In this document: piece after piece, positions 1 to 43,195 of the stretch
How the letters are laid out: every line of letters starts with the position of its first letter
Numbering within the stretch: position 1 is the first letter of the stretch
Origin: Mizuhopecten yessoensis
Lineage: Eukaryota
Assembly (NCBI RefSeq): GCF_002113885.1
Contig: NW_018408465.1
Location: forward strand, 3,128,060 to 3,192,059
Reading direction: 5' to 3'
DNA: 64,000 nucleotides
Notes under the pieces: model-generated
What the model saw: the letters and a program-made list of their open reading frames with translations, nothing else
Told to the model about the DNA's origin: nothing
Database searches by the model: none
Program-made: the position numbers and the translations under genes

Positions 1-1059
1 ACTGCACCTTTTGGTAGGATATATAGCCAAATTCAGCACTTTGTCTCCCCCGGCCAAGTACAGACAGGGGAGATAACTGCATCAACAGAGCACCACATCC
101 CCTGTCGTACGCTGGGCAACACCCTGAAGCGCTGTTTGTTCTGTCAATTGGGGCAAGTTAAAACCAAGTCTGGCTGGAGCCCGCTCACCAGGTTCCAGTG
201 TGCTAAATGTGGTGTGGCACTGTGTCTGGGTCAGAGGAGCAGAAAAAACTGCTTTCTTAACTACCATCGATACATCAGCGCTATGCCTATACCTGACACC
301 AGGGCGATGTCCGATGCCATGAGTCATTCCTTGTCTGATTTCACAAGTCGTTCCTTGTCTGATGCCAGGGGGATGACGGATGCCATGAGTCATTCCTTGT
401 CTGATGTCACAAGTCGCTCCTTGTCTGATGCCAGGGGGATGACAGATGCCATGAGTCGTTCCTTGTCTGATGCCAGGGGGATGACGGATGCCATGAGTCA
501 TTCCTTGTCTGATGTCACAAGTCTCTCCTTGTCTGATGCCAGGGGGATGACGGATGCCATGATTTGTTCCTTGTCTGATGCCAGGGGGATGACGGATGCC
601 ATGAGTCATTCCTTATCTGATGTCACAAGTCGCTCCTTGTCCTTGTCTGATGTCACAAGTCTTGCCATGAGTCATTCCTTATCTGATGTCACAAGTCGCT
701 CCTTGTCTGATGCCAGGGGGATGACGGATGCCATGAGTCTGGCAGGGTCACAAGCTATGAGCTTATCCTTTTCTGATACCAGGGGTCAGCATGTTTCAGA
801 GGCCAGGAGTCGCAGCATGTACACCCATCAAACTTTGGGAATGGCTATGAGTCACAGAATAACTTCCCAACATGGAAATGCTACCAGTGACATTGTGTCT
901 GTACATGAAGGGTGTACAGATGCCACAAGTAGTGCCGACCTGAAGTCGTCTTCTGGTGACAGTGCAGGTCAGAGTATGCTCTCACTGGGTATTCCAGGAG
1001 ATGCTGCGAGTCACAATGTGTATCCAGATCCCGCTCTTAGAGACGGAACAGATCACTAG
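1..1059 (+). CDS. Alternative terminal exon E1 (5' edge outside window): piggyBac-type Cys-rich zinc domain plus a long Ser/Asp/Met-rich repeat tail
   Basis: Frame 1 is open from base 1: ...EHHIPCRTLGNTLKRCLFCQLGQVKTKSGWSPLTRFQCAKCGVALCLGQRSRKNCFLNYH..., then SLSDARGMTDAMSHSLSDVTSR repeats, stop TAG at 1057-1059. Acceptor not visible. Confidence 0.8.
   Translation, partial: TAPFGRIYSQIQHFVSPGQVQTGEITASTEHHIPCRTLGNTLKRCLFCQLGQVKTKSGWSPLTRFQCAKCGVALCLGQRSRKNCFLNYHRYISAMPIPDTRAMSDAMSHSLSDFTSRSLSDARGMTDAMSHSLSDVTSRSLSDARGMTDAMSRSLSDARGMTDAMSHSLSDVTSLSLSDARGMTDAMICSLSDARGMTDAMSHSLSDVTSRSLSLSDVTSLAMSHSLSDVTSRSLSDARGMTDAMSLAGSQAMSLSFSDTRGQHVSEARSRSMYTHQTLGMAMSHRITSQHGNATSDIVSVHEGCTDATSSADLKSSSGDSAGQSMLSLGIPGDAASHNVYPDPALRDGTDH
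290..785 (+). repeat. In-frame coding minisatellite in E1 (about 42- and 24-bp subunits, about 66-bp higher unit)
   Basis: Repeated tccttgtctgatgccagggggatgacggatgccatgagtcat and tccttgtctgatgtcacaagtcgc; reading frame preserved throughout. Confidence 0.85.
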
Positions 1060-2054
1060 AGAACTACTAGTGACACGATGTGTAGTATCATTTGTGTAGA
1101 AGTAGAACTGTTTGTTGACAAGAGGACATCAAGGAACTGGTGACCACACATTTAAGAGAATGCTATAAATACTGAGGATGAACATGATAAGTAACAAAAC
1201 GTGACACTGCCAGGCTTTGTGCTCAAGGAAATTTGAACAGAAGTATTATGAAATTAAAGTAACTTGCATGTACAGTATCATAACACTTATTACTGAAACA
1301 CATTGTTACTTATTATCAATAGAAACTTTTAGTTGACACACAATACTGAATCATGAGTGTTCCTGTTCTTCACCATGACCATGAAATGACTACAGAAAAG
1401 TGTTTATATTAAAATTATTTGTTCAAAAGGAAAGTGTAAACTTTTAATTTGGCTTGTTGGCTGCATTGTAATAAGGACTGGTAGCGGATCAGCTGACTCA
1501 GGGTTGTCATAGGTAAATAAGTGTCATAGGTAAATAAGTGGAAATTTGCTTTGTGCACCTGTAACTGTTTCACATATAAAACATGTTTATGTAGGCACAT
1601 AGTAGGCATTATGTCGGGTACCAAAATAGGATCACCTTTGACCTTGACCTAAGTACCAGAATTGGAATGCCATTGACTTTTGACCTTGACCTCTAGTACT
1701 GAAATATAGGGTTACAGGCCAAAATCAAATGTGGTATTCATAAATACAATGGTATAATGATATAAACAGATATTGTGCACTGAAACCTCTATTTAGTATG
1801 GTTTTCATGTAAATAGAATGTTGGGTGCGATGGTTGGTATCCAGGAAACCTTCAAGTAAGTTAGGTCTAGTTTATGTAGATTTTCATTGTCACTGCTTGG
1901 TTTTGATTACTGCCGATTCAGTTATCTTAAATATACACAATTATGGAAATATTAAAAAAACATCAACAATATTAAGGTGTAAAATTGAATATTGGATAAT
2001 GTTCAGAGCATATAAAAAAGAACATCACTAATTCTTTGATACATGTTCACCTAG

Positions 2055-2254
2055 GGTTGAAGACGGGAGGTACACCGAGAAAACCTGCTCAGTTGCATTG
2101 GCCAACCAAACTGAAAAAACGGATATGCAAAGAATGTAAAAAGTCTGGCGTGAGAAGGGAGCCAAGCTCTGGGTGTGAAAAGTGTCATGTAAATCTATGT
2201 TTACCATGCTTCAAGCCGTATCATCATGCAGCATATCCGGAGCTGTTCCAGTGA
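2055..2254 (+). CDS. Alternative terminal exon E2: divergent piggyBac/PGBD-type Cys-rich domain lacking TKSGW
   Basis: Acceptor gttcacctag|GG (phase 1); LHWPTKLKKRICKECKKSGVRREPSSGCEKCHVNLCLPCFKPYH; no ATG between upstream in-frame stop (1997) and the domain; stop TGA 2252-2254. Confidence 0.75.
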
Positions 2255-2320
2255 CACTATAAAATGTACTTCTACAGTGATTAACGTAAGCTGTAATTTG
2301 ATTCAGTGATTGTATTACAT

Positions 2321-2411
2321 TTAACTCGTTCACCCCTGAAGACGCATTTGAACTCTTCCAATTCAATGGTTGAAATAGTTCACTGTGAAATTTCAGGGGT
2401 GAATGAGTTGA
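2321..2411. mobile_element. About 90-bp MITE family A (TTAA-flanked, TIR CTCRTTCACCCCTGAA)
   Basis: ttaa-ctcgttcacccctgaa...ttcaggggtgaatgag-ttga; homologous copies at 26637-26727 and (inverted) 28787-28877. Confidence 0.75.
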
Positions 2412-3157
2412 GGAAAGGAATTGTACCAACCAAAAGGTTTACATATGTGTCATAACCACCTAAGGGAAATGGTATATCTCCTCATTGCTTTATGCTTACA
2501 GTTGGATGTCTTATGTGATGTTGAATTTGTCTTATGCCTTATATTGACTTCCTGTCAAAAACACTTACACGTGTATGACACACCAAGCTGGTGTCAAGGT
2601 CAGCTGTTTTAGTGCAGAAACTTTACACATGTATGACACACCAAGCTGGTGTCAAGGTCAGCTGATTAAGTGCAGAAACTATCTGTGTAAACTTTGACCT
2701 GTCTGCATTGTTGAGTATATCCAATTATACAACAAAGTTATCATCACACTAAGTTGTAAGCTGATGATTGAGGTGGTGTACATACAAATATATAAAACGG
2801 TCCCTTGGAGTGGTTACTTATTAGTTTCTTGCCTGTACAGATTCGTAAAATATCGGAGGGAAAAATGCTGTAGCCTGTCTGTTTTGGTTAAGTAAATACA
2901 ATTATGTACAATATTGTCACAACAGAGACACTTTCCTCAGAGTTTTAAAATATTTTTCCCTGTAATCTGTCTGCTTTTTTGAGTAAACACAGGTACATGA
3001 AATATTTAAGGAACACAAAACTGTTTGTTAGAGTAAATACAGGTATATGCAATGTTGTCACAACAGAAACACTTACCTGTATTTTAAGTGTTGTTTTTTT
3101 TACCTGTAACCTGTCTGCTTTGGTTGAGTATTACAGGTATTTTTTTGCTCTTTGCAG

Positions 3158-3468
3158 GTAGTCTGATGCCATTAAGTCAGTGCTCAGTTAAGCTCCTTCA
3201 TCAAACAATCAATTCAGAAGCTCCTGATTTTGGGGATCACACTCTAGTACGACTGGAGAACAACAAAAAGATTCGCTGTGCATTGTGTCTAGCTAATAAA
3301 CATACGACAAAGTCTGGCTGGGACCTGTTTACTAAGTTTAAATGTTCAAAATGCCAAATTCCCCTGTGTACTCTTGTTTATGGAGGCAAGAGAGATAAGA
3401 GGAACTGCTTCGATATTTACCATAGACAATTGATGGGCATGCCCGTTGCACCAGAAAAACCATGGTAA
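3158..3468 (+). CDS. Alternative terminal exon E3: piggyBac-type Cys-rich domain
   Basis: Acceptor ttttttgctctttgcag|GT (phase 1); DHTLVRLENNKKIRCALCLANKHTTKSGWDLFTKFKCSKCQIPLC...NCFDIYH; stop TAA; AATAAA at 3512. Confidence 0.85.
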
Positions 3469-3744
3469 CAAGATTTTAAACAGTTGCTTTTGTGTAATAG
3501 AGACAATCCTGAATAAATTATATTCACTGAATGAGAATGAGAATGAAAACATGCACAAATGAAGGTGTTGAAGCACCATGAACTACACAACATTACCAAT
3601 ACAAAAATGTCCTTGTTGCTTTTAGTTGGAAAGATAAAAAAAAATGTGGATAGTAATTTGTACAGCAGGAACACCGTCCAGATTGTTATCATGAGGATAG
3701 TTAAAACAATTTGTATGTATGGTATTCAATGTAGGTTCTGGTGG

Positions 3745-4500
3745 TAGGTTATCTATTGTGTACACCAGGCTTGGAGTACCCTTGCTGGTGGAATGCGCCT
3801 AGCACCTTATCATAGGTTATTGTTTGTGTAAACCAGGCTTGGGAGTACCCATACTGGTGGAATGCGCCTAGCAGCTTATCATAGGTTATTGTTTGTGTAC
3901 ACCAGGCTTGGAGTACCCTTGCTGGTGGAATGAGCCTAGCACCTTATCATAGGTTATTGTTTGTTTAAACCAGGCTTGGGAGGACCCGTGCGGGTGGAAT
4001 ACGCCTAGCTCCCTATCATTGGTTATTGTTGGTGTACATCCGGCTTGGGAGTACCCTTACTGGTGAAATGCGCCTAGCACCTTATCATAGGTTATTGTTT
4101 GTGTATACCAGGCTTGGAAGTACCCGTACTGGTGGAATACGCCTAGCACCCTATCATAGGTTATTGTTGGTGTACACCAGGCTTGGGAGTACCCTTACTG
4201 GTGGAATGCGCCTAGCACCTTATCATAGGTTATTGTTTGTGTATACCAGGCTTGGGAGTACCCGTACTGGTGGAATGCGCCTAGCACCCTATCATAGGTT
4301 ATTGTTTGTGTACACAAGGCTTGACTGGTGGAATGCCACTAGTGCCCTAACATAGTCGGGTTATTGATTGTGTACGCCAGGCTTGGAGTACCTTGACTGC
4401 TGGAATGACTTTAATGCCCTAACATAGTCAGGTTATTTAATGTGTACGTGGCTGGTGGAATGGTTCTAGTGCCCTTACATAGTCAGGTTATTGATTGGAG
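3745..4500. repeat. Minisatellite, about 62-63-bp unit
   Basis: Repeated tacaccaggcttgggagtacccgtactggtggaatgcgcctagcaccttatcataggttattgtttgtg. Confidence 0.9.
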
Positions 4501-5330
4501 GAGAAAATTGCCTTTATTCGTGGAAGGCCGCCAAGTCTGGGTGATAATGATTCATGGCATAGTAGAGACTGTACAGGTGAAAATTGAGTATTTATTACAC
4601 CACACAAATATAAGGCGATTGTTTTCAGCAGGCTTTATTGTCATTTCTTGCTAGCTAGGCTTATGGTTCTGTGGTCTATATAACAACTTAACTTTATATA
4701 TAGGTGCTTGTAGAGAAATCAATTTCAGGGTGCTCAATTTTTATATTTCGTTTGTCAGTTGATACAAGCAAATAAGGCTATTTATATAAAATCAATATCC
4801 TCCTATGTTATGAAATATATTCCATACTGGTACCGATTGCAGCAGATGTCTGGAATTGATCCTGAATGATAAACATGGATGAATTATTTTTTTTTCACTT
4901 CAGGGCATATTTTGAGGCCATTTATGGGTAAAATTTCAGCCCCATTTCTAATGGAAAATTGTGCAATTTTCCCCCAAAATCTTTTCAAAGTTTTCAAATA
5001 TGAAGTGTTATTTTTTAGCTTGTATTCAGATGACAGTCCAGCATTTTACATGAAAAATGAGATAAAATAAAAATCATTGTTTGGTATGCAATTTTCCCTG
5101 TTTAAAAGCCACAGGTGCCATTGCCTATTAAAGGGGGTGGGGATGTACTGGTCATGACCAGGTTCAGGGATAACAGCATGTCTGTCCTATTGATAATGAC
5201 AGATATGTTTGTGTCCTTGTGGATGACTACCTCCTATGTCTGTGTCCGTGTATATGTAGTTTCCTTACCGTTTTGGTGTCATAGTGGTTTTAGTACATAA
5301 TTTAACAGGTATTTTTTTGGTTCTTTGCAG

Positions 5331-5737
5331 GTAGAGAGATGGCGTTAGGTCAGTACTCCTTTCAGGCCCTTCATCAATCTATGTATTCAGAGGCTACCGA
5401 TTTTGGGGATCATACTATCATACGAACAGAGGGCAACAAAAACATACGCTGTGTGCTGTGTCAGGCTAATAAAAGTACCACAAAGTCCGGCTGGGACTCG
5501 TTCACCAAGTTCAAATGTTTGAAATGTCAGATTCCCTTGTGTACCACCGTATATGGAGGTAGGAAGAGAAAGAACTGTTTTGATATTTATCACCGACAGT
5601 TGATGGGGATGCCCCCTATGACCCCTGCTCCCAATGTGCCCCAGCAACCATGGCAACAATTGGCTTGGCAACAAGAATCCGGGCTAGATGTGTCGGCCTC
5701 TGTGGTGTATGATGCTAATAGACCTAACCCGAAATAG
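5331..5737 (+). CDS. Alternative terminal exon E4: piggyBac-type Cys-rich domain (close paralogue of E3)
   Basis: Acceptor tttttttggttctttgcag|GT (phase 1); DFGDHTIIRTEGNKNIRCVLCQANKSTTKSGWDSFTKFKCLKCQIPLC...NCFDIYHRQLMGMP; stop TAG. Confidence 0.85.
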
Positions 5738-6978
5738 TCATTTCATACTTTCGGAGTGTGTTGGTGTCTATATATGTTGTTCATTAAGTGTTTTTGTAGT
5801 TTGGACATGCCTGTATAACTTTTCTTATGTTTTTCTGTCCATTGATGATCTTCAGAAGTGTTTATTCAGGAGAGAGAGAGAATGCATGGTCTAGGGGAAT
5901 GCCCCCGAGATTCAGAAACTGACTGTAATTCTGATCGTTATCACATATTCCATGGTTACTTGATGTGCGAGGGATTTGTGACTGTATAATTGTAATTGAA
6001 GTGTAAATAGTGTCGCCACCTATAAACAGAGTGGTCATTTTGTTTTGTGGGATACAGAGGGTGTTGTTTGTATAGAAATAAAATGTAACTTCGACTTGTT
6101 CCAACACAATTGCAATCACTGGTGAAAAATGGCATGACTACCATCACTGTGTAACGCAAGTATATCCTGAAACAGTCGTAGATGTTGGATGTGTATTTGT
6201 ATACATGAACGTTACTGTCACATCCAAATGTTAATAAGATTACCAGGGCAATGTCACCTAGCTAACACCATGTAAATAACTAAAATTAACATGAGTAGTA
6301 TCTTGTTTTTGTCATAATTTCATAATTTCAATAAAATATTCATTGCTACAAAATGTTTGTTAGTATTTTTTTTTGTAGCATTTCAGAATATGAGAATTCT
6401 GTGTCTTTAAGTTATGTACTTGTTTTCTTGCTTAAAGGGGAATAACTCTTGTTCATTAACAAATAGTCTGCTCTGCTTTCTCATTACAAGGGGCATAACT
6501 CTTATTGATTCCCATGTTTCATTGAGAAACATCTCTCGAAGGTGTTTATATTTCGATAACCTTATTTTTACTGCACATAAGGTTCTTGTGGTTGAGTGTC
6601 TGAGGCATTAGGTTTTCATATTTAAATCCACTCAATTCCAATAAATCTTAAAGAAAGCCAATAAGGTGTTGTTTACAAGGATGTATCAAATTTACATGAA
6701 ATTATTAACTGCTATATAAACTAAACAAATGCATATACTCTACAAGCATGATCGCTATGGTGATGAAGGAGGTTGGAAGGTGCACATTTTTTCTGTTTAA
6801 TGATGTCTTTTAGGCCGTTTTGCAATAAATCAATCTGTTTTTTTAATCTTAAGAAATGAAGGCATATATTAGTCTGATACTTTAAGATTGAAATGGGTAG
6901 TCCAAACACGAAACAAAAGCTAGCCATGTTACACAGTTGTACAATACTGTACTGACTCTATTTTCTGGATTTTTGCAG

Positions 6979-7409
6979 GCCCCTTTACTCGTCTGGGTGT
7001 GCCTGAACGTATGTCCCTACCCGGGGAACTCCAGATGCTACCTGGGTTTGCTAGGGCCTTTCCAATCCTACCAGGGTTATCGGGGGATGTTCTAAAGCAG
7101 CCCGATTTTTCGGGTGAATTCCAGACCCCACACATGATTGGAGTCCGAGAGGAACATGTGCCGGTTCGTGTGGAGGACAATAAGAAAGTGCGCTGTGTTC
7201 TGTGTCAGCTCAATAACCGCACGACCCAAGCGGGATGGGCCATCTTCAGTAAATACAGATGTGCCAAATGCCATGCAGCACTGTGTATTCTCACACCCCG
7301 CAGTAAAAGGATGCGCAATTGTTTCGACACATATCATGACCAGTTATTCGGGACTGACCCTGATAGGAGCAGAAACACCTGTACCTATGGGGTTCTGGGT
7401 GATCAATAA
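6979..7409 (+). CDS. Alternative terminal exon E5: Pro-rich linker plus piggyBac-type Cys-rich domain
   Basis: Acceptor ttttctggatttttgcag|GC (phase 1); EHVPVRVEDNKKVRCVLCQLNNRTTQAGWAIFSKYRCAKCHAALC...NCFDTYH; stop TAA. Confidence 0.85.
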
Positions 7410-8965
7410 GTTTTACACTGAAACGGAAGTAGTCGTCAAGTTCGAGAAGAGTTGTCTATTTGCTATGAAGCACAAGGGCTGATTGGACATGTAAAGATTG
7501 ATGTTGGTCACAGCACATATCTCTTGATGTTGTGTGTCATGTTATTGTTGTGTGTTATTTGTTGAAGACAAATTATGATACAACAGCGCCAAATTGGACA
7601 TTTACAGAATCTTCTGTGAAAATGAACATGACTATTAGTAGAAAGTTTAAATGTGTGTCCTGGGTTTTGTAACGTGTTAATCCCAACTTATAATGTAGAT
7701 CTAGCTCAATGAAGATGGCTTCAGCTACATGGAAATGTTCCATGTGAATTGCTTGGGAACTGGCAGCAGAGCATAACCTTAAAAAATAAACTCATAACAA
7801 AAACATACAAAACTACAAATTGTTCACCATGTAGAGCAAAAACGTGTTTTAGGTTAACATAATTATTATTATATCAAGCAACATGACGTAAGATGGGGTT
7901 AACTGTTATTGGTTATTGTTACAAAGCCTTGTTGAACTCTGGGTTTACTTGGAAGTCTAAACAGAATCAGAACCTTGATGTACACTTTTTTCCCCCCCGA
8001 GAGTGACTGACAACCATACTTTTCAGTGATATGGCTGTACCAGTGGTACCCTAGGTATTTTGGTATGAGGTATACCTGTATGTATTGTACATTAGATAAT
8101 TTGTATTGGTCAGAGCCCATACTTACATTGCGTCTCTTCTAATCTTTTTACGTGTGCCGTATGTTTATTAGAATTTGATTTAAAGAAAGTTGTAGGAAAG
8201 GTTAGTAACATAAAAATTGTTCGCGCTCTTGAGTCGTCGAGGTGTAGTGGCAAAGTATGACTAGAGGCTACAGGTAAATCACAGGCTATTAATGCGTCAA
8301 GAAGCTATGTATGAATTTGACCATGGACTTGTGAAATGCTGTTTTGGAGCTTTATTACTACATGGGGGAAATTCGGATAACCGAAAAACCAAGCCTTTGT
8401 CAAAGGTTCGTAAATGACTGCCAAACACAATTGTATAGAAAATTTAAAAATAAAATAAAATGGTTATAAAAGCATTGAGCAGAGAGAACCCTGGGTGTAG
8501 CCAGCGTTTAAATGTATCCAGTGTCAAAAACCCACATCCACATCGCACATATACCTTGATTTTTACATGAAGAACATACTTTGACGCAGTATACAGATAC
8601 CTGGAGGCCATGTGAGGATACAAAGGCGTGATAGCTGATGAATAATGTATCGTGTTTGCTTATATATGTGTCCACTATCATTTGATCATGATTTTCCAAC
8701 TTTTCCATGCGGGAAAAGTGTCTATTACGATGACTATTTTTCAGAACTTCAGTTAGTGTTGGAAATTTTTCCAAATTGCTTAGCGCTGATTAGGTAAAAA
8801 CCAATAGACTGTTTTGGACAAAGATACTGAACACGTAGCTAGCTGGTCATGACACAACTGTAACGCACTTAAAGCATGTTCGTATGTGTAAGGGTTATTT
8901 ATATGTATATATGGGTGACGGATGTAGGATGTCTTAACTGACCGGCCATCTTTTTCCCATTTCAG

Positions 8966-9279
8966 ACTCTGGGTACATGCCTAACAGGGACCCTGACTAT
9001 CTAAACCTTATGCAATGTTACAGCAGTCTGGCCATGCAACACCGACCCATCCGCAACGAGGGCTACAAGTACAAATGTTGTGTCCTCTGTCAGATGAACA
9101 AGGTCAAAACAAGGTCGGGATGGCGCGTGTACACGCATTTCAAATGTGAACGATGCAATGTGCCCCTTTGTGTTCGGGAGAGGAACTGTTTCCTGGAATA
9201 TCATAACATGATGTTCAATGACAGGAAGCAGGAAAGTTCCCACATACCACTTCCTCCATGGAAAATCAACAACTCCTAG
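8966..9279 (+). CDS. Alternative terminal exon E6: piggyBac-type Cys-rich domain
   Basis: Acceptor ctttttcccatttcag|AC (phase 1); QHRPIRNEGYKYKCCVLCQMNKVKTRSGWRVYTHFKCERCNVPLCVRERNCFLEYH; stop TAG. Confidence 0.85.
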
Positions 9280-10632: not shown

Positions 10633-10904
10633 ACTGGACTGGTGACTGGCTTGGTAGGCCTGCCATGGACATAGATAGCATACCGGTATCGAATCACAGG
10701 CCGGTCAAAATAGAATCTAACAAAATTCGTCTGTGTATTTACTGCCGTCACAATAGAACGAAAACAAAGTCGGGGTGGAAGGTGTATACGTCATACCGGT
10801 GTGACACCTGTCAGCTCGCGCTGTGTACCACTAGAGAACGCGACTGCTTTCACATCTACCACAGAGCTTTACTTCAGTCTAAGAACAAACTGTTGCAGCA
10901 ATGA
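10633..10904 (+). CDS. Alternative terminal exon E7: piggyBac-type Cys-rich domain
   Basis: Acceptor cttgtttattttcag|AC (phase 1); NHRPVKIESNKIRLCIYCRHNRTKTKSGWKVYTSYRCDTCQLALCTTRERDCFHIYH; stop TGA; AATAAA at 11223. Confidence 0.85.
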
Positions 10905-13248: not shown

Positions 13249-13790
13249 ACGCTGCTCATCCCTATAACATTGACCTTCAGGGAGATAGGCAGACGGTAGT
13301 GGGTAGTGTAGTTAGCAGGCAGGGCATGTTTCAAGGTCAAACTCGAGGTCAAGCTTCTGACCACTGGGGAGTTCTGCCTCCTCATCCTGTGGGTGTACCA
13401 AGACTCCTTTCAGAAGTAAAGCATTCTTATGGTGTTGGCGCACAATTTCCTTACTCAGTTCAAACTCCTATGTTCTTTGCTGATGACAGTAATACTGGAG
13501 AAAAGAGGCAGTATATGAACCTTTCTGAGCCTGGTACTGGTCAAGGACAATGTTTAGATGGCTCTATAACCTCTTCCGGGAGCATGAGTGGACATCGGCT
13601 TGTAAGAAACACCGGGACGCGGTATAAACCCTGTGTCTTGTGTCAGTTAAAGAAAGTTCGCACCAAGTCGGGATGGTACGTGAACACGTACTTTAAATGT
13701 CTTGCTTGTGACGTGCCACTGTGTAAAAGTCCTTTAAGGGACTGTTTCCGGCAGTACCATAACTATATTGAACCACTTGACAAATCCTGA
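13249..13790 (+). CDS. Alternative terminal exon E8: long linker plus piggyBac-type Cys-rich domain
   Basis: Acceptor ttctttgtctgctttcag|AC (phase 1); GHRLVRNTGTRYKPCVLCQLKKVRTKSGWYVNTYFKCLACDVPLCKSPLRDCFRQYH; stop TGA; AATAAA at 13925. Confidence 0.85.
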
Positions 13791-25642: not shown

Positions 25643-26049
25643 GCCCAGGTCGGGCTGATCCGCACCGCGATTTTGGCGCTCTGGGTATTGGCAGCGATCC
25701 AATGGGGATCGTACTCACGGGCAGTCTGATGTCTCCTCAAATAGGCGACGTATCGTCCGCACACCACAGTCTCTACCTTGCTGACCAGAAGGACAGTTTA
25801 CTTATGTACCACAGGCCAGTGACGGCGAAGGGATACAAGAAACCATGTTTGTTCTGTCAGATCAACAACGTCAAGACCAAGTCGGGATGGTACACCTACA
25901 CCTACTATAAGTGTGAAGCTTGTGATATCCCGCTCTGTCAACCTCAGGGCAAACGAGATTGTTTCGTGCGCTACCATGAATACTTGGCTGCCGGTCAGAG
26001 CAAATCTGAACCTGATGCGACTCATAAGCATTCGTCCGGATATCTGTGA
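25643..26049 (+). CDS. Alternative terminal exon E11: piggyBac-type Cys-rich domain
   Basis: Acceptor ctcgctttgtcctttcag|GC (phase 1), with ctctaat branch-like motif upstream; YHRPVTAKGYKKPCLFCQINNVKTKSGWYTYTYYKCEACDIPLCQPQGKRDCFVRYH; stop TGA. Confidence 0.85.
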
Positions 26050-26636: not shown

Positions 26637-26727
26637 ATAACTCATTCACCCCTGAAGACACATTTGAACTCTTCCACTTCAAAGGTTGGAATAGTTCATT
26701 ATGAAATTTTGGGGGTGAATGAGTTAA
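26637..26727. mobile_element. MITE family A copy
   Basis: ataa-ctcattcacccctgaa...gggggtgaatgag-ttaa; homologous to 2321-2411. Confidence 0.75.
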
Positions 26728-28786
26728 AATATGTGCTGCCTCACTCCGTATTTCTGGTAATTGTTTTTTTCTTGGCATATCCACTACCAATCCCACATAT
26801 TACAAATGTTGCTGCAATCAACAGTTTGTAATTTCACTGTTTCAATATGAAATATGCTTACATTGCAAAGGGAAGTAACTCTTGCTTTATCTGGAACTCT
26901 TCTTTGCAATTAGAAGTGCTGAGGTGGTACCCTTAACCTTAGACACATGTTTCACCTATCTGTATATACCAGTTTGAGGGAGTTGGTCAAAGCAAAACAA
27001 AAATGAGCACAATTTTAACGAGATGTTCAGCGACAGGAAGTACAGATCTGATTATTGTATGTTGTTTATTAGAATCATTTGATTGAGGGTCGACTATGAC
27101 AGCAGATAGAATTTGCACAGAGTACGATGTGTTATAGAATGTGATCGAAAAAAGTTCTTCATCGCAGACATTTTCTGTTGTTTTGGAATTCCTTCAAACT
27201 ACTGGTGACATTTCCTGATACGTAGTTTTGGATGGGTTTTACCATTTACCATTTACCAAATGATTATCGGATAGACTATATATATCAGTGGCACACAGTT
27301 GGTATTTGAAGACCGTATATATATATTATAGTTTAGTTAAATATATATAGCATTTAGCTTTTTCAACATATTTATTTGTTGGGATCTATTGTCATCTGTC
27401 AACAAACGGCAAATCAAAGTATCACAGAATCCAAGCATTTATGACCATATAAGGTTGTTGACGTCCAGATTGACCAAGTATGTGAGTGTGTATTGTATGA
27501 CGATTATCATGTTGAATCCCAGGACACGTTTGTCCCGTTACCTGTTGTAATCACTATGTAAATATCACCAATTTAAAATATACCTTCAGATGTCATTGAA
27601 TGATTAAGTGGTATACTATTAGATACAACCACATCATACTGAGGCTATTTTAGCGGACCTTACTTGAAGAGCTAAATTTGCTTTGGTTATGAGAATGAGT
27701 CCATCGTCCGTCATCAATTTTTCTGTAGAATGCTTTAATTTAGTCCAGAATAGCTGGTCGGTATTACCTAAATCTAGTAAAGAGCATCCATTGGTGAAAA
27801 TGGATTCAATGTTAAATAAAAGGTAGGCTGTGACTTTCGCTTGTGACACGTGGGCAGAGGGGCGGGGTCGAATATTGGAAATAGTTTCAGTAAGCGATAA
27901 TTAATCAGACTTGGTGCCATACATTAAGGGCTGATTTGAGAGAGCTGCTGTGGTGTCTTATTTTCACTTCTCCATTTCCACAATGGTGACTTTACAAAAA
28001 TAATAGTTGTAAAGAGTGCCTTTCTGCTGATAAAGTGTTTTTTTCGGTCATTCAAAATTAAACATGAATACCTGCTCTCTGATTGGTTTAGAAATTTCAG
28101 CGTTTCAATTTCTAACTGTTGAATGAAAACCGGAATTGATAGGAATTACATTCCTGAGCAGGTGATGTTAATAACAGTATTAATTGGAAATCTGAAGATG
28201 GCCACCTTGTCTTAAAATAGGAGAAATAAAGCCTTTTCTTGTCTAATTCAGATAGAAACATGTTAGCAAATACTATGCCATAGACGTTTTGTTAACGGTA
28301 ATTGACGATGCTTTAGATAACAGTTTTATTCTTTATAGAAAATTATAATGATGTTTCCGAAGATACCTGTCTACATGTTATTACTCTCCCGGTTGTATAT
28401 ATTCATGAGTTTAATGTCAAAGATGTTTCTTGCTATTTTTTGTCACAAATGTACGCACATACTTATTGTAACAAATTTCATATAACATGATTCTTTTTAT
28501 ATCTAATTGCCATAGACACGTTTCACTGTTATAGTAGTGTTGTAAAATTGTTCATTCAAATATGTAACATTTAATTTTTCTTATGACCAAAAAAAGGAAT
28601 TTTCTGCCCAAATTTATCGGTGGTTTATCTTTCTGAATGTGTCACTGATGACTTTATGATTTTGTAGAGTTGAAAGTTTTACATATTATATGACACCAAA
28701 TTGGAGATTATATACATGCTTAATATGAAATATATATATGACACTAGACAGGTTACCAAAGCTATGTTTCACTTAGTAAACATGTT

Positions 28787-28877
28787 TTAACTTGCTCACC
28801 CCTGAAATTTCATAATGAACTATTCCAACCTATGAATTGGAAGAGCTTAAATGTGTCTTCGAGGGTGAATGAGTTAA
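28787..28877. mobile_element. MITE family A copy (inverted orientation)
   Basis: ttaa-cttgctcacccctgaaatttc...cttcgagggtgaatgag-ttaa; internal sequence is the reverse complement of the other two copies. Confidence 0.75.
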
Positions 28878-29675
28878 AAAGGAACATATTTTTTTTCAGG
28901 GACTTTTAAGGCATTAAGTATGTTTTAAGCGAAACCAATGTGTCTTGTACCTGATGATCTTTTTTATGAAATCTAAGTCATTGTTCCTGATGAAGATTCA
29001 AGTGAAATTCATTTCTCTTGTTTAATTAATTTTAATTGAAATTAAAATTGTTTTGCCAATTGAAAGTTTAATTGAAGTCAAAGTCTTTAGTGTCCTATAA
29101 CTTTGCATCTTTTCAAAGTCATTTACATGCCATCTTTTCAAGGATCAACATTGTTTCCTGGAAGGGGGTTCTGTTGTGCTGTGTTGCAAAATCTTACAGT
29201 TTTTAAGATCGTAAGAAGGACCCATGTTTTGATGAAATTCCATGGTTTAAGCTGTTCTATGCAATGAATGAATTTAACTTGGATTTTGATGAGGGGGACG
29301 TTGGAAGTTTCTATTCATTTGAAATTGATTTCTGTTTACAAAACCTTGTCATATATATCACTCGTGTTCCTACATGTGCAAACATTAAATGTGTTGTGAT
29401 TGTAATAAACTGTAGCTAGAGATAAACAAGGTGTTATGTGTTTTGTTTGCACATTAAGCGTGGTGGACCGGGAGGGACGCTTTAGGCTGAGGACAGCAGC
29501 CTGATTTTGAACATACAGTGTATTATAAGTTATACACGTAATCAGAAGTGCTTGTATGAAGAACCATGATTATCATTCTCATTACTGGTTATCACATTGG
29601 GTTGGAACTGATCATACACGTTTTAGTAGAAATTAAACTTTTGACCAGCAGTGTAAATCTAGCAGACGATACAGT

Positions 29676-29865
29676 TATTCCGTCTTTGCGTATTGCAGAG
29701 TTATCTTCTCTTGGGAGCAGGTATTGATTGTTACGTCACTTGTTTGTGAGAGAAACGTCATCAATTTTTGAGAAAACGACGTAATTTTCTCACACAGACC
29801 AATGACTTAACAATCAATACCTGCTCCCAAGAGAAGATAACTCTGCAATACGCAAAGACGGAATA
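29676..29865. mobile_element. Palindromic (hairpin) MITE, about 190 bp
   Basis: tattccgtctttgcgtattgcagagttatcttctcttgggagcaggtattgattgtta is exactly reverse-complemented at the right end (about 58 bp), with further imperfect pairing inside; TA at both termini. Confidence 0.85.
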
Positions 29866-30144: not shown

Positions 30145-30491
30145 GCAAGAATGCCCGCGGTCTGGAGCAGGTTGTTGAACAGTTGCGGGACAGACAGGGA
30201 CAGGTTCAAGGCTTACATCTGAGTTATGTCCCCGGAAGTTCCGTACAACACACCGCCCTGCCCTTAAAGCACGACGAATTTGATACAAAAATCCACCGGC
30301 CGGTAACCACCGCAGGATATAGAAAGCCATGTGTGTATTGTCAAATCAACAAAGTGAAGACCAAGTCTGGCTGGTATACCTACACCTACTTTAAATGTGA
30401 GGCATGTGACATCCCACTGTGTAAAGGCAAGAGAGACTGTTTCACTCAGTACCACAACTACCTAGAATGGGGCGGACACGATATCAAGTAA
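30145..30491 (+). CDS. Alternative terminal exon E12: piggyBac-type Cys-rich domain (close paralogue of E11)
   Basis: Acceptor cttctgttttggttttcag|GC (phase 1); IHRPVTTAGYRKPCVYCQINKVKTKSGWYTYTYFKCEACDIPLCKGKRDCFTQYH; no Met in the ORF; stop TAA. Confidence 0.85.
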
Positions 30492-32780: not shown

Positions 32781-33124
32781 GGTCGCACAGTCAAACAAAC
32801 GAAAGATCACGATATGGTACGGTCCGTCAAGGTGCCTACCCCCTCTCTGGTATTGATCATGGGATGGTTCAGCACTTACCAATCGTGATGGATGGACCGG
32901 GTGCGTACAAGAAGCCTTGCGTTTGGTGCGAGGTAACGAAGGCGCGGACCAAGTCCGGGTGGTACATCTACTCACGGTATAAGTGTAGCCAATGTGACGT
33001 ATCACTCTGTACCGGAAGTCGGGGCTGTTTCACCGCCTATCATAACAGCTACCTGGGCATGCAGCATGCTAGCCCCCACCATCCAAACCAACCCGCACCA
33101 ACAAACCAAGGACAGACCAAATGA
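32781..33124 (+). CDS. Alternative terminal exon E13: piggyBac-type Cys-rich domain
   Basis: Acceptor tttattatgcttgcag|GG (phase 1); QHLPIVMDGPGAYKKPCVWCEVTKARTKSGWYIYSRYKCSQCDVSLCTGSRGCFTAYH; stop TGA. Confidence 0.85.
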
Positions 33125-34007: not shown

Positions 34008-35080
34008 GAGAGGAGTGGCTCTCGGTATTGTACATGCTCCTTATTATATTGATAGAGAGGAGTGGCTCTCTGTATTGTACATGCTCCTTATTATATTGAT
34101 AGAGAGGAGTGGCTCTCGGTATTGTACATACTCCTTATTATATTGATAGAGAGGAGTGGCTCTCGGTATTGTACATACTCCTTATTATATTGATAGAGAG
34201 GAGTTGCTCTCGGTATTATACATACTCCTTATTATATTGATAAAGAGGAATGGCTCTCTGTATTGTACATGTCCCTTATTATATTGATAGAGAGGAGTGG
34301 CTCTCTGTATTGTACATGTCCCTTATTATATTGATAGAGAGGAGTGGCTCTCTGTATTGTACATGCTCCTTATTATATTGATAGAGAGGAGTGGCTCTCT
34401 GTATTGTACATGCTCCTTATTATATTGATAGAGAGGAGTGGCTCTCGGTATTGTACATGCTCCTTATTATATTGATAGAGAGGAGTGGCTCTCGGTATTG
34501 TACATACTCCTTATTATATTGATAGAGAGGAGTGGCTCTCGGTATTGTACATACTCCTTATTATATTGATAGAGAGGAGTGGCTCTCGGTATTGTACATA
34601 CTCCTTATTATATTGATAGAGAGGAGTGGCTCTCGGTATTGTACATACTCCTTATTATATTGATAGAGAGGAGTGGCTCTCTGTATTGTACATGCTCCTT
34701 ATTATATTGATAGAGAGGAGTGGCTCTCGGTATTGTACATACTCCTTATTATATTGATAGAGAGGAGTGGCTCTCGGTATTGTACATACTCCTTATTATA
34801 TTGATAGAGAGGAGTGGCTCTCGGTATTGTACATACTCCTTATTATATTGATAGAGAGGAGTGGCTCTCGGTATTGTACATACTCCTTATTATATTGATA
34901 GAGAGGAGTGGCTCTCTGTATTGTACATACTCCTTATTATATTGATAGAGATGAGTGGCTCTCTGTATTGTACATGCTCCTTATTATATTGATAGAGAGG
35001 AGTGGCTCTCTGTATTGTACGTGCTCCTTATTATATTGATAGAGAGGAGTGGCTCTCTGTATTGTACATACTCCTTATTA
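34008..35080. repeat. Minisatellite, 47-bp unit, about 23 copies
   Basis: gagaggagtggctctcggtattgtacatactccttattatattgata repeated with few variants. Confidence 0.95.
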
Positions 35081-36000
35081 TTAGCTCACCTAGCACGAAG
35101 TGCCAAGTGAGCTTATGCCATGGCGCGGCGTCCAGCGTCAATATTTTACTTTAAACGACTTCTTCTTAATAACCGAAAGGCCTAGGTTGTCGATATTTGG
35201 CCAGAAGCAAACTTGGATGAAGGGCTACAAAGTTTGTTCAAATAAATGACCTTCACCCATATTCAAGGTCACAGGGGTCAAATATGTTAAAAAATTTAAA
35301 CAACTTCTTCTGAATAACCAAAATTCCCTGGGTGATGATATTTGGCCAGTAGCATGCTGGGGCAAAGGGCTATCAAGATTGTTCAAATGAATGACCTTCA
35401 CCTATATTCAAGGTCACAGGGGTCAAATATGTTAAAAACTTTAAACAACTTCTTCTGAATAACCAAAATGCCCAGGGTGATGATATTTAGTCAGTAGCAT
35501 ACTAGGACCAAGGGCTACCAAGTTTGTTTAAATGCATGACCTTGAATCATATTCAAGGTCACAAGGAGCAAATATGTTCAAAATATTTCAACAACTTGTT
35601 CTGAATAACCAAAAGGCTCAGGATGTTGATATTTAGTCAGTAGCATATGCTGGGATCAAGGACTACTATGTTTGTTAAAGTGAATGACTTTGACTTATAT
35701 TCAAGGTCACAGGGGTCAAATTTGTTTAAAATCTTTAAACAACCTCTTATGAATAACCATGGGTCCCAGGATGTTTATACTTTGCAAGTTGCATCCTGAG
35801 ATGAAAGGCTATACAATGTGTTCAACATAATGACTTTGTTCGACTTTCAATCACAGGGGTGAAATGTTTAAAAAAGAATTAACAGGGTCTTTTGAATGAA
35901 TTTTAATCATAAATACTGATATTTTGCCTGTAGCTGTATTTTAAGGTTACAAGTGTGAGTTTTATACCAGGTGAGCGATGCAGGCCCATTGGGCCTCTTG
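35081..36000 (+). mobile_element. Non-autonomous Helentron-associated element (HINE-like) with internal about 120-bp repeats
   Basis: 5' ttagctcacc.. subterminal IR, internal tgacctt..tcaaggtcacaggggtcaaa repeats, 3' caggtgagcgatgcaggcccattgggcctcttg (IR partner plus short palindrome); no TSD. Confidence 0.75.
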
Positions 36001-36015
36001 TATTGATAGAGAGGT

Positions 36016-36342
36016 AAGAAAGTAGTCAACGCTGGTAATTTGTAGGTGTAGGCACAGGTTAAAAAGTAGTCAACACTGACAATTTGTAGGTGAAGGCACA
36101 GGTTAAAAAGTAGTCAACACTGACAATTTGTCTGTGAAGGCACAGGTTAGAAAGTAGTCGTCAAAGCTGACAATTTGTCGGTGTAGACACGGGTTAGAAA
36201 GTAGTCAACGCTGACAATTTGTCGGTGTAGACACAGGTTAGAAAGTAGTCAACGCTGACAATTTGTTGGTGTAGACACAGGTTAGAAAGTAGTCAACGCT
36301 GACAATTTGTCGGTGTAGACACAGGTTAGAAAGTAGACAACG
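36016..36342. repeat. Minisatellite, about 44-bp unit
   Basis: ttagaaagtagtcaacgctgacaatttgtcggtgtagacacagg, about 7 copies. Confidence 0.9.
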
Positions 36343-40031: not shown

Positions 40032-40252
40032 TTGGCGGCATTTGGTACTTTGACGAGGCTAACCAAGGTAACTACCCGTGTCTGATGTGCCGGAAACGTT
40101 TTGCAACACCACAGCGCCTGCGCCAACATAGCCGACTGCACATGGAGCCAGCTTACAGCTGCTCTTTCTGTTGTAGGAGGTTCACGTGGAAACACTCATT
40201 CGACCGGCACATGAGGACGGTGCACAGTATCAGGTGTGTTCACAAGGGATAA
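40032..40252 (+). CDS. Alternative terminal exon E14: two C2H2 zinc fingers
   Basis: Acceptor gtgttttacag|TT (phase 1); YPCLMCRKRFATPQRLRQHSRLH-MEPAYSCSFCCRRFTWKHSFDRHMRTVH; no ATG before the first finger (in-frame stop at 40004); stop TAA. Confidence 0.8.
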
Positions 40253-41124
40253 GTTGTCTCCCCTCTACATTGAGATATTACTGGATTACTTCCCTTGTTT
40301 GATTTTTTTGTGTGTTTCTTGCGTTTGATTGAATTCCAAACGAGTCTGTTCTAAGGGATGTCCCAACATCGGGAAATGTCAATTGAAAATATATTATGAT
40401 TGATTAAACGACTACATCTGGATGATACGATGATGCAGTTTTGTTATGATGGCTTTTTGAAATAAGCATAAACAAAAAAAAATCAAAAAAATCTACTGAA
40501 AATATATGTACAGAATTACAAGTAGTAGTTATAAATATTGCAGTTTAACATTGGGCAGCATTTTGATTAAAGGAGACAGACAATCTGGTGATTCTTTATT
40601 TGAAACGTGAGTTTAAAAGATTGTGTTATGCATTGTAGGCAACTTTTCTTTGAGACTGATTTAATTTTTCACTGTTTGATAGGTTTCCGTTTTGGTATAA
40701 ATGTTCTGAGCATTTTATTCGCCGTTCTAAGTAATTTATCGAGCTGACGTTGTCGTAAAGTTAGTACAAAAAAGTTGGTATACTTACACTGTATATGACC
40801 AATAGGATAGATAGATAGCTTTGCTGACCTATTTGCATTCAGAATGCCAGTTGATAGTTGATTGCTCTGATACCCCTTATTGACTACGGTCCTTTGTATG
40901 TAATATTAGAGACATCGTTAACACGTTTTGTGTACCCAAAAAACTTGGGTAAAAAAGGTTTTCCTCCTGTTGTTTATTACTGACTTTAATTGACTTAACT
41001 AGAGGTCACTGCCACTCAGTTCTGCCTTATTAATATATCTTCAGATAACAAGTTGTTTTTCCATTGTAAATTAAACAATGTTTGCAAGATACTAGAAGGA
41101 CATTCAAAAAGGTTGTTAGTATTT

Positions 41125-41985
41125 TTTATAAGCCCGTCATTCGACGGGTCGTATTATGGTATGGGCGGTGTTTACTGATGTCTGTGTGACCAGATGTCCG
41201 TCCGTTAACTTTTCCTTGTCATCGCTCTCCTGCCTTTATGAACATATCTTGAGAAATCTTGGTGCACACATTGCATACGAATATAACTCGAACGAGTTGG
41301 CACTTCAGATGTTTACACACATTTTTTGGTGGAGTTATGCCCCTTTTATTGCCAAATAAGGGCATTGTGTAGTTAATGCACTAACTTTTTTTTAATCAAT
41401 TCCTTCACCATTTTGTACGGTAATGCTAGAAGAAATAATATTCAACACTTAAATTATGTGTTTTTTTGGCGAGTTTCAACTTTCCGTGTTTTGGCATATC
41501 ACACTTGACAAAGCAACACTGTTCATCGTTTTTGCCGTTAACTTTTGCTCGTTTACACGATAACTCAAACAATTGTTCTCTGATTTTTGTTAAACTACTT
41601 GGTTGTTTCATCACCTGAATGCATTGAATGAGTTCTTAAATCGTGAAATTCAAACGTTATTCGGCAGAGTTATGCCCCATATTCATTGCCAAATAAGGGC
41701 ATTCCGTCGAAAATGCAAGAACTTTTTGAGTATTTGTTCAAGACTCCTACCTCAAAGCCAAGGTTCTGGTTTTAGTAATAGTAACATTGACCGCAAAAGT
41801 GTAATTCTGAAACTCAAAAACAGCTTGCGCCATAAACAAAGTAAATGCATGGCAAGATCACAGTCACCAACAAGACGGTGGCAGTAAGCACATTAAATCA
41901 TATATCACTCAACCTGATCCAATTCATCAGTACCCTTCCGAGGGTCTGACAGGTGTATCATACTTCCGCTCACTGTGGTCTTGTT
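41125..41985 (+). mobile_element. Degenerate HINE-like element (second family)
   Basis: tttatagcccgtc..gacgggtcgtattatgg head hairpin, tgtccgtccgttaac, duplicated gagttatgcccc..attgccaaataagggcatt units, ends in ..tcttgtt. Confidence 0.45.
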
Positions 41986-42983
41986 CGTCACATGTTTTGT
42001 ATTTAGGATTGTAACAACAGGCCTTAAAGTTCAACCTTGAAGCTACTTATATACACAGTACCTTGAAGCTACTTATATACACAGTACCTTGAAGCATCAC
42101 CAGAAAGGTCCCAGGTTTGATACTTAAATGCTTTCATGGAAGTGTGGGTGTATTAAATAGGACGCAAGCTCATTTCGTATAAAAGTGCTCATGATCAGTA
42201 TAGTTTCAACTTTGCAGTTGAGAGGTTTTGTAATCAGTTTCTCAATGAGATGTTGGAATGGTATTTTATGTTGTTGAAATATCTCGTACATTTTAATGAA
42301 ATGTAGTTCATAGTTTGTGGTTATGGGAGGCACGTCACAGTATTTCATTTCTTGTTGAAAATATCAGCCGTTGGATCAGGTTTTTAAGTGAAGTACGTTT
42401 GATGTAACCGGTAATATGTAACGTTATTGTGATAATGGGATTTCCTATGGTGTGAACACTATAGACAGAGCACTTTGTCATGCTTCTGACTCTACTCTGA
42501 TGTCTTCTCCTGGATTTTATAGATATCTATATTCATTGTACATTGGAACTAGACTGTACAGCGGTACATTCAGGTGTACATGTGTATTGCCATCATTTGT
42601 TAAAATCAAAATGCTGCATCGTAAACTCTCATGTAATCCAGGTAAACATACGTACTATCCATTTCAATTTTTGTTGCATTTTCAATTTTTGATAATAAAT
42701 GGCACCCCAGACTATTACTGTAGGTTGATCGTTGTCAATGTTGATTGTAGAGGAGTATTTGAACTCCATCACTTTCTTTGAACGTACAAAAACCGGAAAT
42801 CAAATTTGACTGAAAACGCTTTATATTTAAATCAAAAACACACATTCATAGTACGCTTTTCACTCTTGTGTGCATGACATATACCGAAACCTTGCTACTA
42901 AATGATCGCCTTCCTCTGAAAATATGCTCTTAAGAATAATCTGAAATGTTTTATTAAATATATACTTATGTTTTAAATTGCAG

Positions 42984-43195
42984 AAATACGTCGCCAGTTG
43001 TTGAAGACGCACCAGATCCAATGCCCGGTATGTAAGAAGGTTTTTAACCGGACGTATATCCGCCAGCACCTGACGAAGCACGGGGAAGCAACGCACTCCT
43101 GTCCAATGTGTGGTCGTGTGTTTGTGTGGAAGAGCTCCTTCGACCGCCACAAGCGTACGTGCCAGTACAAGAAAGTCTACATGACTTTTAACTAG
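42984..43195 (+). CDS. Alternative terminal exon E15: C2H2 plus C2HC zinc fingers (last cassette seen)
   Basis: Acceptor tgttttaaattgcag|AA (phase 1); IQCPVCKKVFNRTYIRQHLTKH-GEATHSCPMCGRVFVWKSSFDRHKRTC; in-frame stop at 42974 upstream and no ATG before the fingers; stop TAG. Confidence 0.8.

Follow-up and report, generated by a model that had tools for sequence, protein, structure and literature searches.

Proteins in which one BTB front can carry any of a large number of alternative DNA-binding tails have previously been tied to the arthropod Tramtrack group (PMC11426971). In Drosophila mod(mdg4) the constant BTB exons end in one common donor that serves at least 30 alternative 3′ exons; every one of these codes for a single small zinc module, and the last common intron contains conserved elements (PMC11426971, PMC13490949, PMC4387717); the BTB is of the Tramtrack type (FxLRWN), the tails are FLYWCH domains, some of the exons lie on the opposite strand and all of the mRNAs are trans-spliced. 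Drosophila lola, and also broad, fruitless and tramtrack, join a constant BTB part to alternative C2H2 tails, with lola giving around 20 isoforms from a Tramtrack-type BTB, C2H2 tails only and no piggyBac-type domain. In host-transposase fusions such as CSB-PGBD3, a host domain has gained an alternative 3′ exon that derives from a transposase (10.1101/2020.05.07.082677; PMC12062965); these genes have one captured exon, often encoding the whole transposase. KIAA1958 has alternative exons with Crypton-derived DUF3504 domains (PMC3212892), but only two of them and no BTB.

The 64,000-nt stretch of DNA analysed here, which we call the window, is the 3′ part of LOC110459972 of the scallop Mizuhopecten yessoensis. 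It contains no N and is identical to NEDP02005138.1 over 53,195 nt. An earlier note on this DNA had proposed a mollusc gene with at least 15 same-phase 3′ exons, or cassettes, and a constant 5′ part upstream. Inspection of the upstream contig bears this out and extends the count: three exons encoding 577 amino acids, 35.8 kb upstream of the window, are closed by a single phase-1 donor, AAAAG|GTAGGT, and are followed by 36 cassettes, all on the sense strand and all with phase-1 acceptors. Twenty-eight of these encode cysteine-rich domains (CRDs) of the piggyBat type, six C2H2 fingers and two BEN-like domains, each cassette supplying a single zinc or BEN-like module together with a short linker. 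The first 21 lie upstream and the last 15 (22 to 36) in the window, where the features are as follows.

1–1059, + strand: E1 (cassette 22 of 36), CRD followed by a tandem-repeat tail; phase-1 acceptor 8 nt before the window
2055–2254, + strand: E2 (cassette 23), CRD, short and divergent and lacking the TKSGW loop; exact tail of isoform X36; acceptor used in RNA contig X17
2285–2286, + strand: donor in the E2 3′ UTR, joined to the E3 acceptor
3158–3468, + strand: E3 (cassette 24), CRD; exact tail of isoform X31; donor at 3464 in the last codon
4576–4577, + strand: spacer donor, phase 1, joined to the E4 acceptor in one RNA run
5331–5737, + strand: E4 (cassette 25), CRD; exact tail of isoform X21; acceptor used in RNA
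6979–7409, + strand: E5 (cassette 26), CRD; exact tail of isoform X17; acceptor used in three RNA runs
8966–9279, + strand: E6 (cassette 27), CRD; exact tail of isoform X30
10633–10904, + strand: E7 (cassette 28), CRD; absent from the retrieved M. yessoensis tails, orthologous tails annotated in Ylistrum and Argopecten
13249–13790, + strand: E8 (cassette 29), CRD; exact tail of isoform X7
17819–18084, + strand: E9 (cassette 30), CRD; exact tail of isoform X33
22987–23435, + strand: E10 (cassette 31), CRD; exact tail of isoform X14
25643–26049, + strand: E11 (cassette 32), CRD; exact tail of isoform X20
30145–30491, + strand: E12 (cassette 33), CRD, used for fold prediction; orthologous tail annotated in Ylistrum, core identical in Argopecten
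32781–33124, + strand: E13 (cassette 34), CRD; exact tail of isoform X27
40032–40252, + strand: E14 (cassette 35), two C2H2 fingers; conserved donor at 40236
42984–43195, + strand: E15 (cassette 36), two C2H2 fingers; last coding cassette, where the gene range ends; exact tail of isoform X35

Twelve of the window cassettes score above the Pfam cut-off for zf-Tnp_2 (PF13842). E2, which is related but shorter, falls under it, and no solved relative was found for it by sequence. The E1-type repeat is shorter in the 888-residue model P0304. A six-frame motif scan of both strands of the window gave no further cassette and none in antisense, no FLYWCH domain was matched among the tails, and no known RNA family reached threshold in the window.

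The constant protein begins with a BTB domain of the ZBTB/BACH type (PF00651, residues ~21–125) that is followed by a long linker. Its N-terminus reads YQKFYSNQ and the Tramtrack FxLRWN motif is absent. The best 60 solved relatives in the PDB are of the ZBTB, BACH and KLHL types, the closest being the vertebrate ZBTB/POK factors (ZBTB17, BCL6) and BACH1. While the ZBTB/POK factors carry one fixed C-terminal array, C2H2 tails are found in just 6 of the 36 scallop isoforms; we know of no large set of alternative last exons in the ZBTB/POK or BACH1 genes. The isoforms are already listed in RefSeq, as automatic models. All of the 32 isoform proteins retrieved share the 577-residue front and differ behind it, and the tails of 11 window cassettes are reproduced exactly, with the junction residue of each as predicted from the G of the donor and the first two bases of the exon. 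We found no published description of the system in the literature within reach of our search, which included the locus identifiers but only a minority of subscription papers.

Comparison with Argopecten shows how stable the arrangement is. All 36 cassettes are collinear reciprocal best matches between the two scallops with their frames intact, and the CRD cores show a dN of 0.046 against a dS of 1.6 (dN/dS 0.03), although paralogous cores are only 44% identical. Synteny is thus maintained, but the domains are not interchangeable in the evolutionary sense that had been suggested for them, since the same cassettes in the same order under such constraint indicate a fixed set. Independent RefSeq annotations of four scallops and of oysters likewise contain constant-plus-tail isoforms, and Crassostrea virginica and Pinctada have the same design with phase-1 donor and acceptors. 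These relatives were found by profile searches of representatives and with the full-length query; word-based searches with E1 and with the core alignment returned few matches. The scallops also have paralogous loci, with at least three such loci in tandem, and related loci exist in oysters; DUF3504 tails, as in KIAA1958, also occur in a paralogous scallop locus, and C2H2 tails dominate in one. In a tree of 86 CRD cores the scallop orthologues pair well, while orthology to the oyster cassettes is beyond the resolution of the tree.

The splice sites are also uniform. All of the 14 acceptors within the window follow a YAG and enter the zinc-domain frame after 2 nt, and each frame runs to its own stop, as the earlier note had stated. 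A single phase in 14 of 14 would have p ~6e-7 if the phases were independent, which tandem duplication means they are not; phase 1 is, however, also common to the unrelated C2H2 and BEN-like cassettes. Cassettes beginning with GT, which would regenerate a donor, number 3 of 36, about the level of chance. The claim that every cassette is terminal with its own stop stands for the stops but not always for the RNA. The joint 2285>3158 (GT..AG) leads from the E2 3′ UTR to E3 in RNA runs X17 and X20; there is no AATAAA or ATTAAA between E2 and the next acceptor, and no donor matching 2285 in Argopecten. Read-through of the E2 stop into E3 over this joint was rejected because a second stop follows. 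RNA contigs also contain 3464>5331, from the last codon of E3 to E4, which leaves the protein end unchanged, and 4576>5331, in one run. The donor of E14 (40236, CAG|GTGTGT) precedes the E14 stop and joins the E15 acceptor in two annotated proteins, from M. yessoensis and Argopecten, to give a product that reads 16 conserved residues of E15 in another frame; the first 50 nt of E15 are coding in two frames. None of the RNA joints links two domains into one protein.

Local joints of this sort might be taken to mean that each cassette is a small gene of its own with its own promoter, or the decayed end of a piggyBac, and that the shared constant exon is an artefact of annotation. A standalone Argopecten model of 101 residues and many short standalone ORF calls in the assemblies point the same way. 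Against this, the independent annotations in four scallops and oysters agree, the junction residues are those of splicing from the constant donor, and the dN/dS and the 36 intact frames are not those of decay. There is no transposase core, with no long open reading frame for one in the window, and no inverted repeat pair flanks a cassette. The four acceptors checked in RNA contigs (E2, E3, E4 and E5) are all used. Before E2 the contigs have 25 foreign letters at their start, and before E5 they have 24 (in three runs). These are exactly the lengths that a 31-letter assembly graph would give if a single upstream exon with AG at its end led both to E2/E13 and to E5/E11, so that the junctions match a shared upstream exon by length. 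In the four RNA runs no joint was seen from the constant part to E3 or E4, whose acceptors are there joined to local donors. The idea of separate genes is largely refuted and we give it hardly any credence. There is almost certainly one gene, in which three constant exons are spliced from one phase-1 donor to one of 36 acceptors, the set and its order being kept in two scallop genera under strong purifying selection. Overall, the best explanation is that one bivalve BTB gene produces a fixed set of about 36 nuclear proteins, for which we would estimate a probability of roughly 0.82.

The domain on most of these tails is, on the evidence of its model, a C-terminal cross-brace CRD of the piggyBat/PGBD4 type. 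The model of the E12 CRD (pLDDT 88) has one clear structural match, the CRD of piggyBat (PDB 9C0F), with a Foldseek probability of 1.0 and a TM of 0.66 but an E-value of only 0.016; VIA gives this match a Z of 6.5, which is under the safe level of the tool, at an rmsd of 2.5, with the next at a Z of 3.0. The ligand order, H-CxxC-CxxC-(C/H)-C-H, the predicted fold and the long loop before the third Cys are shared with piggyBat, the PGBD2/3/4 CRDs and PF13842, whereas the scallop CRDs lack a DDD core, are fused to a BTB and have a loop six residues longer that contains TKSGW. Bound as a dimer, the piggyBat CRD is specific for its DNA site, and R543 and E545 make contacts to bases (PMC11707139). 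The aligned cassette positions, 7 and 5 before the third Cys, have pair identities among paralogues of only 0.09 and 0.16, against 96% among orthologues. As other positions of the domain also vary among paralogues while staying constant among orthologues, the match of these two is suggestive rather than unique.

It would seem probable from this modelling that each CRD reads a different short DNA sequence, with the TKSGW loop and the two variable positions after it as the candidate reader. A BTB dimer would bring two CRDs together, much as the piggyBat transposase dimer is placed on a palindrome, and mixed dimers of different isoforms could widen the set of targets. The same architecture could instead carry CRDs that read chromatin or proteins, so that the partner to which the BTB hub is recruited would differ between isoforms, in the manner of Mod(mdg4)-67.2 and Su(Hw). 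The CRD of PiggyMac, with a similar ligand pattern, binds histone H3 tails and not DNA, and that of Tpb2 also binds H3 tails (PMC8086355), while C1 and HIT domains share the topology and do not bind DNA (PMC11707139); conservation among orthologues with variation among paralogues would suit protein partners equally well. The E12 model is, however, far nearer to the CRD of piggyBat than to that of PiggyMac (Z of 6.5 against 2.3), the long major-groove loop, rich in Lys, Arg, Tyr and Trp, is retained and the remaining tails, C2H2 pairs and BEN-like domains, are both of DNA-binding classes. We therefore regard protein reading as the function of the CRDs as rather unlikely, and recognition of DNA as the probable one.

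The isoforms contain BTB and zf-Tnp_2 as their only domains, and the transposase-derived domain lies on its own exon spliced to the host BTB part, as expected of a host-transposase fusion. Compared with fusions of the CSB-PGBD3 type, the scallop gene has the CRD alone, amplified to 28 separately conserved alternatives. The CRD exon of a piggyBac-like element may have been captured behind a host BTB gene in the ancestor of pteriomorph bivalves or earlier; the element would have lost its catalytic core, the CRD exon would have multiplied by tandem exon duplication, and the whole gene would have been duplicated as well.

[quoted passage not shown] It differs from mod(mdg4) in a BTB without FxLRWN, 28 piggyBat-type CRD tails, cassettes on the sense strand only and at least three loci in tandem. 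The Tramtrack motif has not been found in Mollusca (PMC11426971), and as the BTB lacks this arthropod motif the bivalve design looks, from its sequence, convergent with that of mod(mdg4) and lola, and apparently built separately.

Choice of tail may be a competition between splicing to a later acceptor and cleavage and polyadenylation after an earlier cassette, most simply in cis; with all cassettes on the sense strand, trans-splicing is not needed. A search for docking-site and selector pairs, in which the conserved sequence that follows the constant donor was set against the 300 nt upstream of every acceptor, gave no signal (mean z −0.2 and −0.1). The same proteins could also come from mRNAs that are partly or wholly trans-spliced as in mod(mdg4) and lola, with the constant transcript stopping in the last common intron and the cassettes transcribed from promoters inside the array. 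A cis route to cassette 36 is 79 kb long and has 35 other acceptors and many poly(A) signals on the way, some RNA contigs have cassettes joined to local donors, and a separate Argopecten model runs from a spacer to the E13 orthologue. The last constant intron has conserved non-coding blocks and a conserved stem (z −2.4), while no known RNA family reached threshold there. Among the blocks are a pyrimidine tract and TGCAG|GTAAGTGG (CAG|GTAAGT), the only YAG|GTRAG and the best U1 match of the intron, at the same place in both scallops. This resembles the TSA motif of mod(mdg4) and lola (PMC4387717), and the scallop site is also similar to a conserved CAG|GURAGU of lola, which lies in the last common intron. 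The AG|GT site is, however, also built like a recursive (ratchet) splice site, which would act in cis. By chance, an intron is expected to contain 0.3 sites of this kind; none was found in the two oyster and pearl-oyster loci examined, and in neither scallop does any of the 36 cassettes lie on the antisense strand, unlike in mod(mdg4). We consider trans-splicing an unlikely alternative to choice in cis.

A broader proposal, which we put forward tentatively and consider rather unlikely, is that bivalves evolved, independently of insects, both the design and its special splicing route, whether the transcripts are trans-spliced or have to go through a recursive step at the conserved AG|GT site. 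The tandem loci, at least three in number, might then form a combinatorial system of around 100 isoforms that recognise DNA, assembled from captured modules (piggyBac, Crypton, BEN and C2H2) and mixing through BTB dimers.

A second case of this design, with another type of BTB and another transposase-derived domain, suggests that it arises repeatedly, and the bivalve gene offers an outgroup for how one of at least 30 last exons is chosen and why trans-splicing evolved. The 28 separately conserved versions of a piggyBac CRD within one gene are a natural panel for the recognition code of piggyBat/PGBD-type domains, which is relevant to the engineering of transposases. For bivalve genomics, there is here a cluster of probable transcription or insulator factors whose automatic names (serine-rich adhesin-like, kelch-like, dentin sialophosphoprotein-like) are misleading, at loci that most analyses collapse to one isoform.

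The window is the 3′ part of LOC110459972, whose RefSeq isoform numbers reach X36. It contains no N and matches M. yessoensis scaffold NEDP02005138.1 (L005, from position 48,940) without a single difference over 53,195 nt. The earlier note had placed a constant 5′ part upstream of the window and suggested looking there for it and for more cassettes; both are present. Three constant coding exons (L005:10,701-13,093), which include the BTB domain, code for 577 residues with one base left over before their single donor, AAAAG/GTAGGT, 35.8 kb upstream of the window. Behind them lie 36 cassettes, every one on the sense strand and in phase 1, comprising 28 with a piggyBat-type cysteine-rich domain (CRD), six C2H2 and two multi-exon BEN-like cassettes. 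The same-phase cassettes first counted as at least 15 (E1 to E15) are numbers 22 to 36 of this array.

All 14 of the named acceptors are, as had been claimed, YAG, with the zinc-domain frame opened after two bases and a separate stop for each frame. A six-frame scan of either strand of the window gave no further cassettes. Twelve window cassettes reach the Pfam cut-off for zf-Tnp_2 (PF13842), E14 and E15 are C2H2 pairs, and E2 is a shorter PF13842 relative by language-model features only. The core alignment gives the common motif H-CxxC-(KTKSGW loop)-CxxC-LC-CF-YH. E2 (window:2055-2254), which is shorter, lacks the TKSGW loop, sits on a long branch and has lower core conservation (31/46 residues); it may have been captured separately, from a piggyBac-like element. 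E3 (3158) and E4 (5331) start with GTAG, so that joining them to the constant exon regenerates a donor-like sequence; the Argopecten E3 start, GTAGGT, is the same as the real donor. Annotated isoform tails match 11 window cassettes letter for letter, and the junction residue in those tails is as expected when G is put before the first two bases of the exon. For E1 and E14 the match holds apart from the repeat length in E1 and a splice from E14 to E15. While E7 and E12 are absent among the retrieved M. yessoensis tails, annotated orthologous tails exist for both in Ylistrum and for E7 also in Argopecten.

Repeats and remnants in the window (window coordinates)
299-739: tandem repeat in the E1 reading frame, units of 42, 66 and 108 nt; an 888-aa model has 44 residues fewer there, and the Argopecten tail is shorter
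2320-2409, 26638-26734, 28780-28878: MITE-like repeat of high copy number, a 90-nt element with terminal inverted repeats that is extremely abundant among RNA contigs
29676-29865: 80-nt inverted repeat, almost perfect, around a 30-nt loop; weak Argopecten match at a different array position
16313-17602, 34008-35081, 48379-50100, 57706-59231, 60368-63831: long arrays of minisatellites with periods of 21, 47, 328, 38, 36 and 61, which explain the spurious Cys-rich ORFs
51742-52247: 500-nt repeat, of which the Argopecten locus has two inverted copies
54670-55233: remnant that by eye looks like the 3′ end of a LINE reverse transcriptase

Contigs from four runs were aligned to window 1950-7900; two of the runs are RNA on record, and splices appear in run X17 but not in run X1, which may be DNA. 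On the E2 side one contig has 25 foreign letters before 2053, and on the E5 side contigs of three runs have 24 before 6977. In the 31-letter assembly graph contigs start at path branch points. E2 and E13 share their first three exon bases and E5 and E11 their first four, and if the constant exon, ending in AAAAG, is joined to these pairs the expected numbers of foreign letters are 25 and 24. From their number, we infer that these letters are the end of the constant exon. Local joints were also seen (2285 to 3158, 3464 to 5331 and 4576 to 5331). All four acceptors in 1950-7900 are used, but in the contigs of the four runs neither E3 nor E4 has a visible joint from the constant exon.

Among the window cassettes E2 alone has no poly(A) hexamer ahead of the acceptor that follows, which fits its splicing into E3. 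The E14 donor at 40236 is kept in Argopecten, and two annotated proteins run from it to the E15 acceptor, reading 16 conserved residues in another frame (window:40236-43033). The first 50 nt of E15 are coding in two frames in both scallops. Together with the local joints of E2 and E3, the E14 to E15 splice shows that some cassettes use the 3′ end of the next one. None of these joints chains two domains in one protein, in line with the earlier note, although the cassettes are not always terminal in the transcript.

In Argopecten irradians the locus (L006) keeps this donor and likewise has 36 cassettes. All 36 are collinear reciprocal best hits, a conserved order of the kind that the earlier note suggested looking for in other molluscs. 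Between the two species the CRD cores have a dN of 0.046 and a dS of 1.6 (ratio 0.03) and the linkers a ratio of 0.32, whereas the median identity of paralogous cores is 44%. Judged from these alignments the repertoire is therefore fixed, with every member under selection, and fast turnover is rejected.

A profile search with 12 cassette cores gave 263 representatives (E <= 1e-10), of which the long proteins are bivalve, with an N-terminal BTB, a C-terminal PF13842 and numbered isoforms, and a full-length query recovered the same kind of isoform sets in four scallops. Every hit with an organism name, a minority of all hits, is from a pteriomorph bivalve. The scaffold or chromosome of the gene also carries at least two paralogous loci with 20 to 30 or more isoforms and with tails that include CRD, C2H2, BEN and DUF3504. 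In M. yessoensis these include LOC110459952 and a third locus of that scaffold, BTB genes of the same many-tail design; in Argopecten one such gene ends 5.7 kb upstream (L006:1-4270). Their tails include BEN, Crypton-derived DUF3504 and many C2H2 arrays. The phase-1 design recurs in Crassostrea virginica (three CRD cassettes) and in Pinctada (at least six in one locus and one in another), and related proteins occur in Magallana, Saccostrea, Mytilus and Tegillarca. One Pinctada gene is preceded at 24 kb by a partial BTB-exon duplicate (L002:10001-10916, 34389-36184), another adjoins a head-to-head BTB paralog (L007:1406-7491), and the Pinctada model FSP39_000606 wrongly chains several cassettes. 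An ENA contig (L003:2053-2641, 9935-10522) carries two phase-1 cassettes, each with two tandem CRDs.

Since all cassettes are on the sense strand, cis splicing suffices for the choice of tail. No pairing of the intron start with the acceptors was found. The last constant intron, behind the constant donor, contains conserved blocks, unlike the spacers of the array, which hardly align from one scallop to the other.

Conserved blocks in the last constant intron, outside the window
L005:17190-17263, L006:20897-20973: pyrimidine tract followed by TGCAG/GTAAGTGG, conserved non-coding
L005:15974-16595, L006:19664-20262: 620-nt conserved block with a conserved stem (z -2.4)
L005:13111-13186, 13762, 14926, 15129, 15247, 18176, 18465: further short conserved blocks

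TGCAG/GTAAGTGG, with its AG/GT at L005:17224, is the sole such site in this intron in both scallops and may be a recursive splice site or a U1 site of the TSA kind. It is no more than a lead: chance alone would give 0.3 such sites, and none is present in the oyster loci. The 620-nt block has a long stem in both species, in which two similar 5′ arms could pair with one 3′ arm, and has no Rfam match.

The gene works like mod(mdg4) and lola, the Drosophila genes that join constant BTB exons to many alternative 3′ exons. It is not a member of that group, because its BTB is without the FxLRWN of the Tramtrack type, its tails are not the FLYWCH of mod(mdg4) and no cassette is antisense. The Tramtrack type was not found in molluscs (PMC11426971), and the closest solved relatives of the scallop BTB are ZBTB17, BCL6, BACH1 and KLHL3. 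As the term is used in 10.1101/2020.05.07.082677, the gene is also a host-transposase fusion, but has the DNA-binding domain alone, multiplied 28 times. In the literature searched, no paper names these loci or describes the design; the isoforms are already in RefSeq as automatic models with unrelated names.

The predicted fold of the E12 core (pLDDT 88) matches only the CRD of the piggyBat transposase (9C0F), with a Foldseek probability of 1.0, TM 0.66 and E 0.016; by VIA the same pair gives Z 6.5 and rmsd 2.5, the next match Z 3.0 and PiggyMac Z 2.3. Pfam and fold suggest that the CRDs descend from a piggyBac element. The PiggyMac CRD, whose ligand pattern is similar, binds histone H3 (PMC8086355), and the scallop CRDs may, less probably, read histones rather than DNA. 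As a dimer, the piggyBat CRD is reported to bind a palindrome, its long-loop residues R543 and E545 contacting bases (PMC11707139). They precede the third cysteine by 7 and 5 residues (numbering offset 6). The matching scallop positions rank with the most variable when paralogs are compared (pair identity 0.09 and 0.16), and orthologs are 96% conserved there; the loop has 26 different sequences in 27 cassettes. BTB domains of this kind form dimers, which would supply the CRD dimer. The best reading, on predicted DNA binding, is that the isoforms make up a family of BTB factors, transcriptional or architectural, each with its own DNA target.
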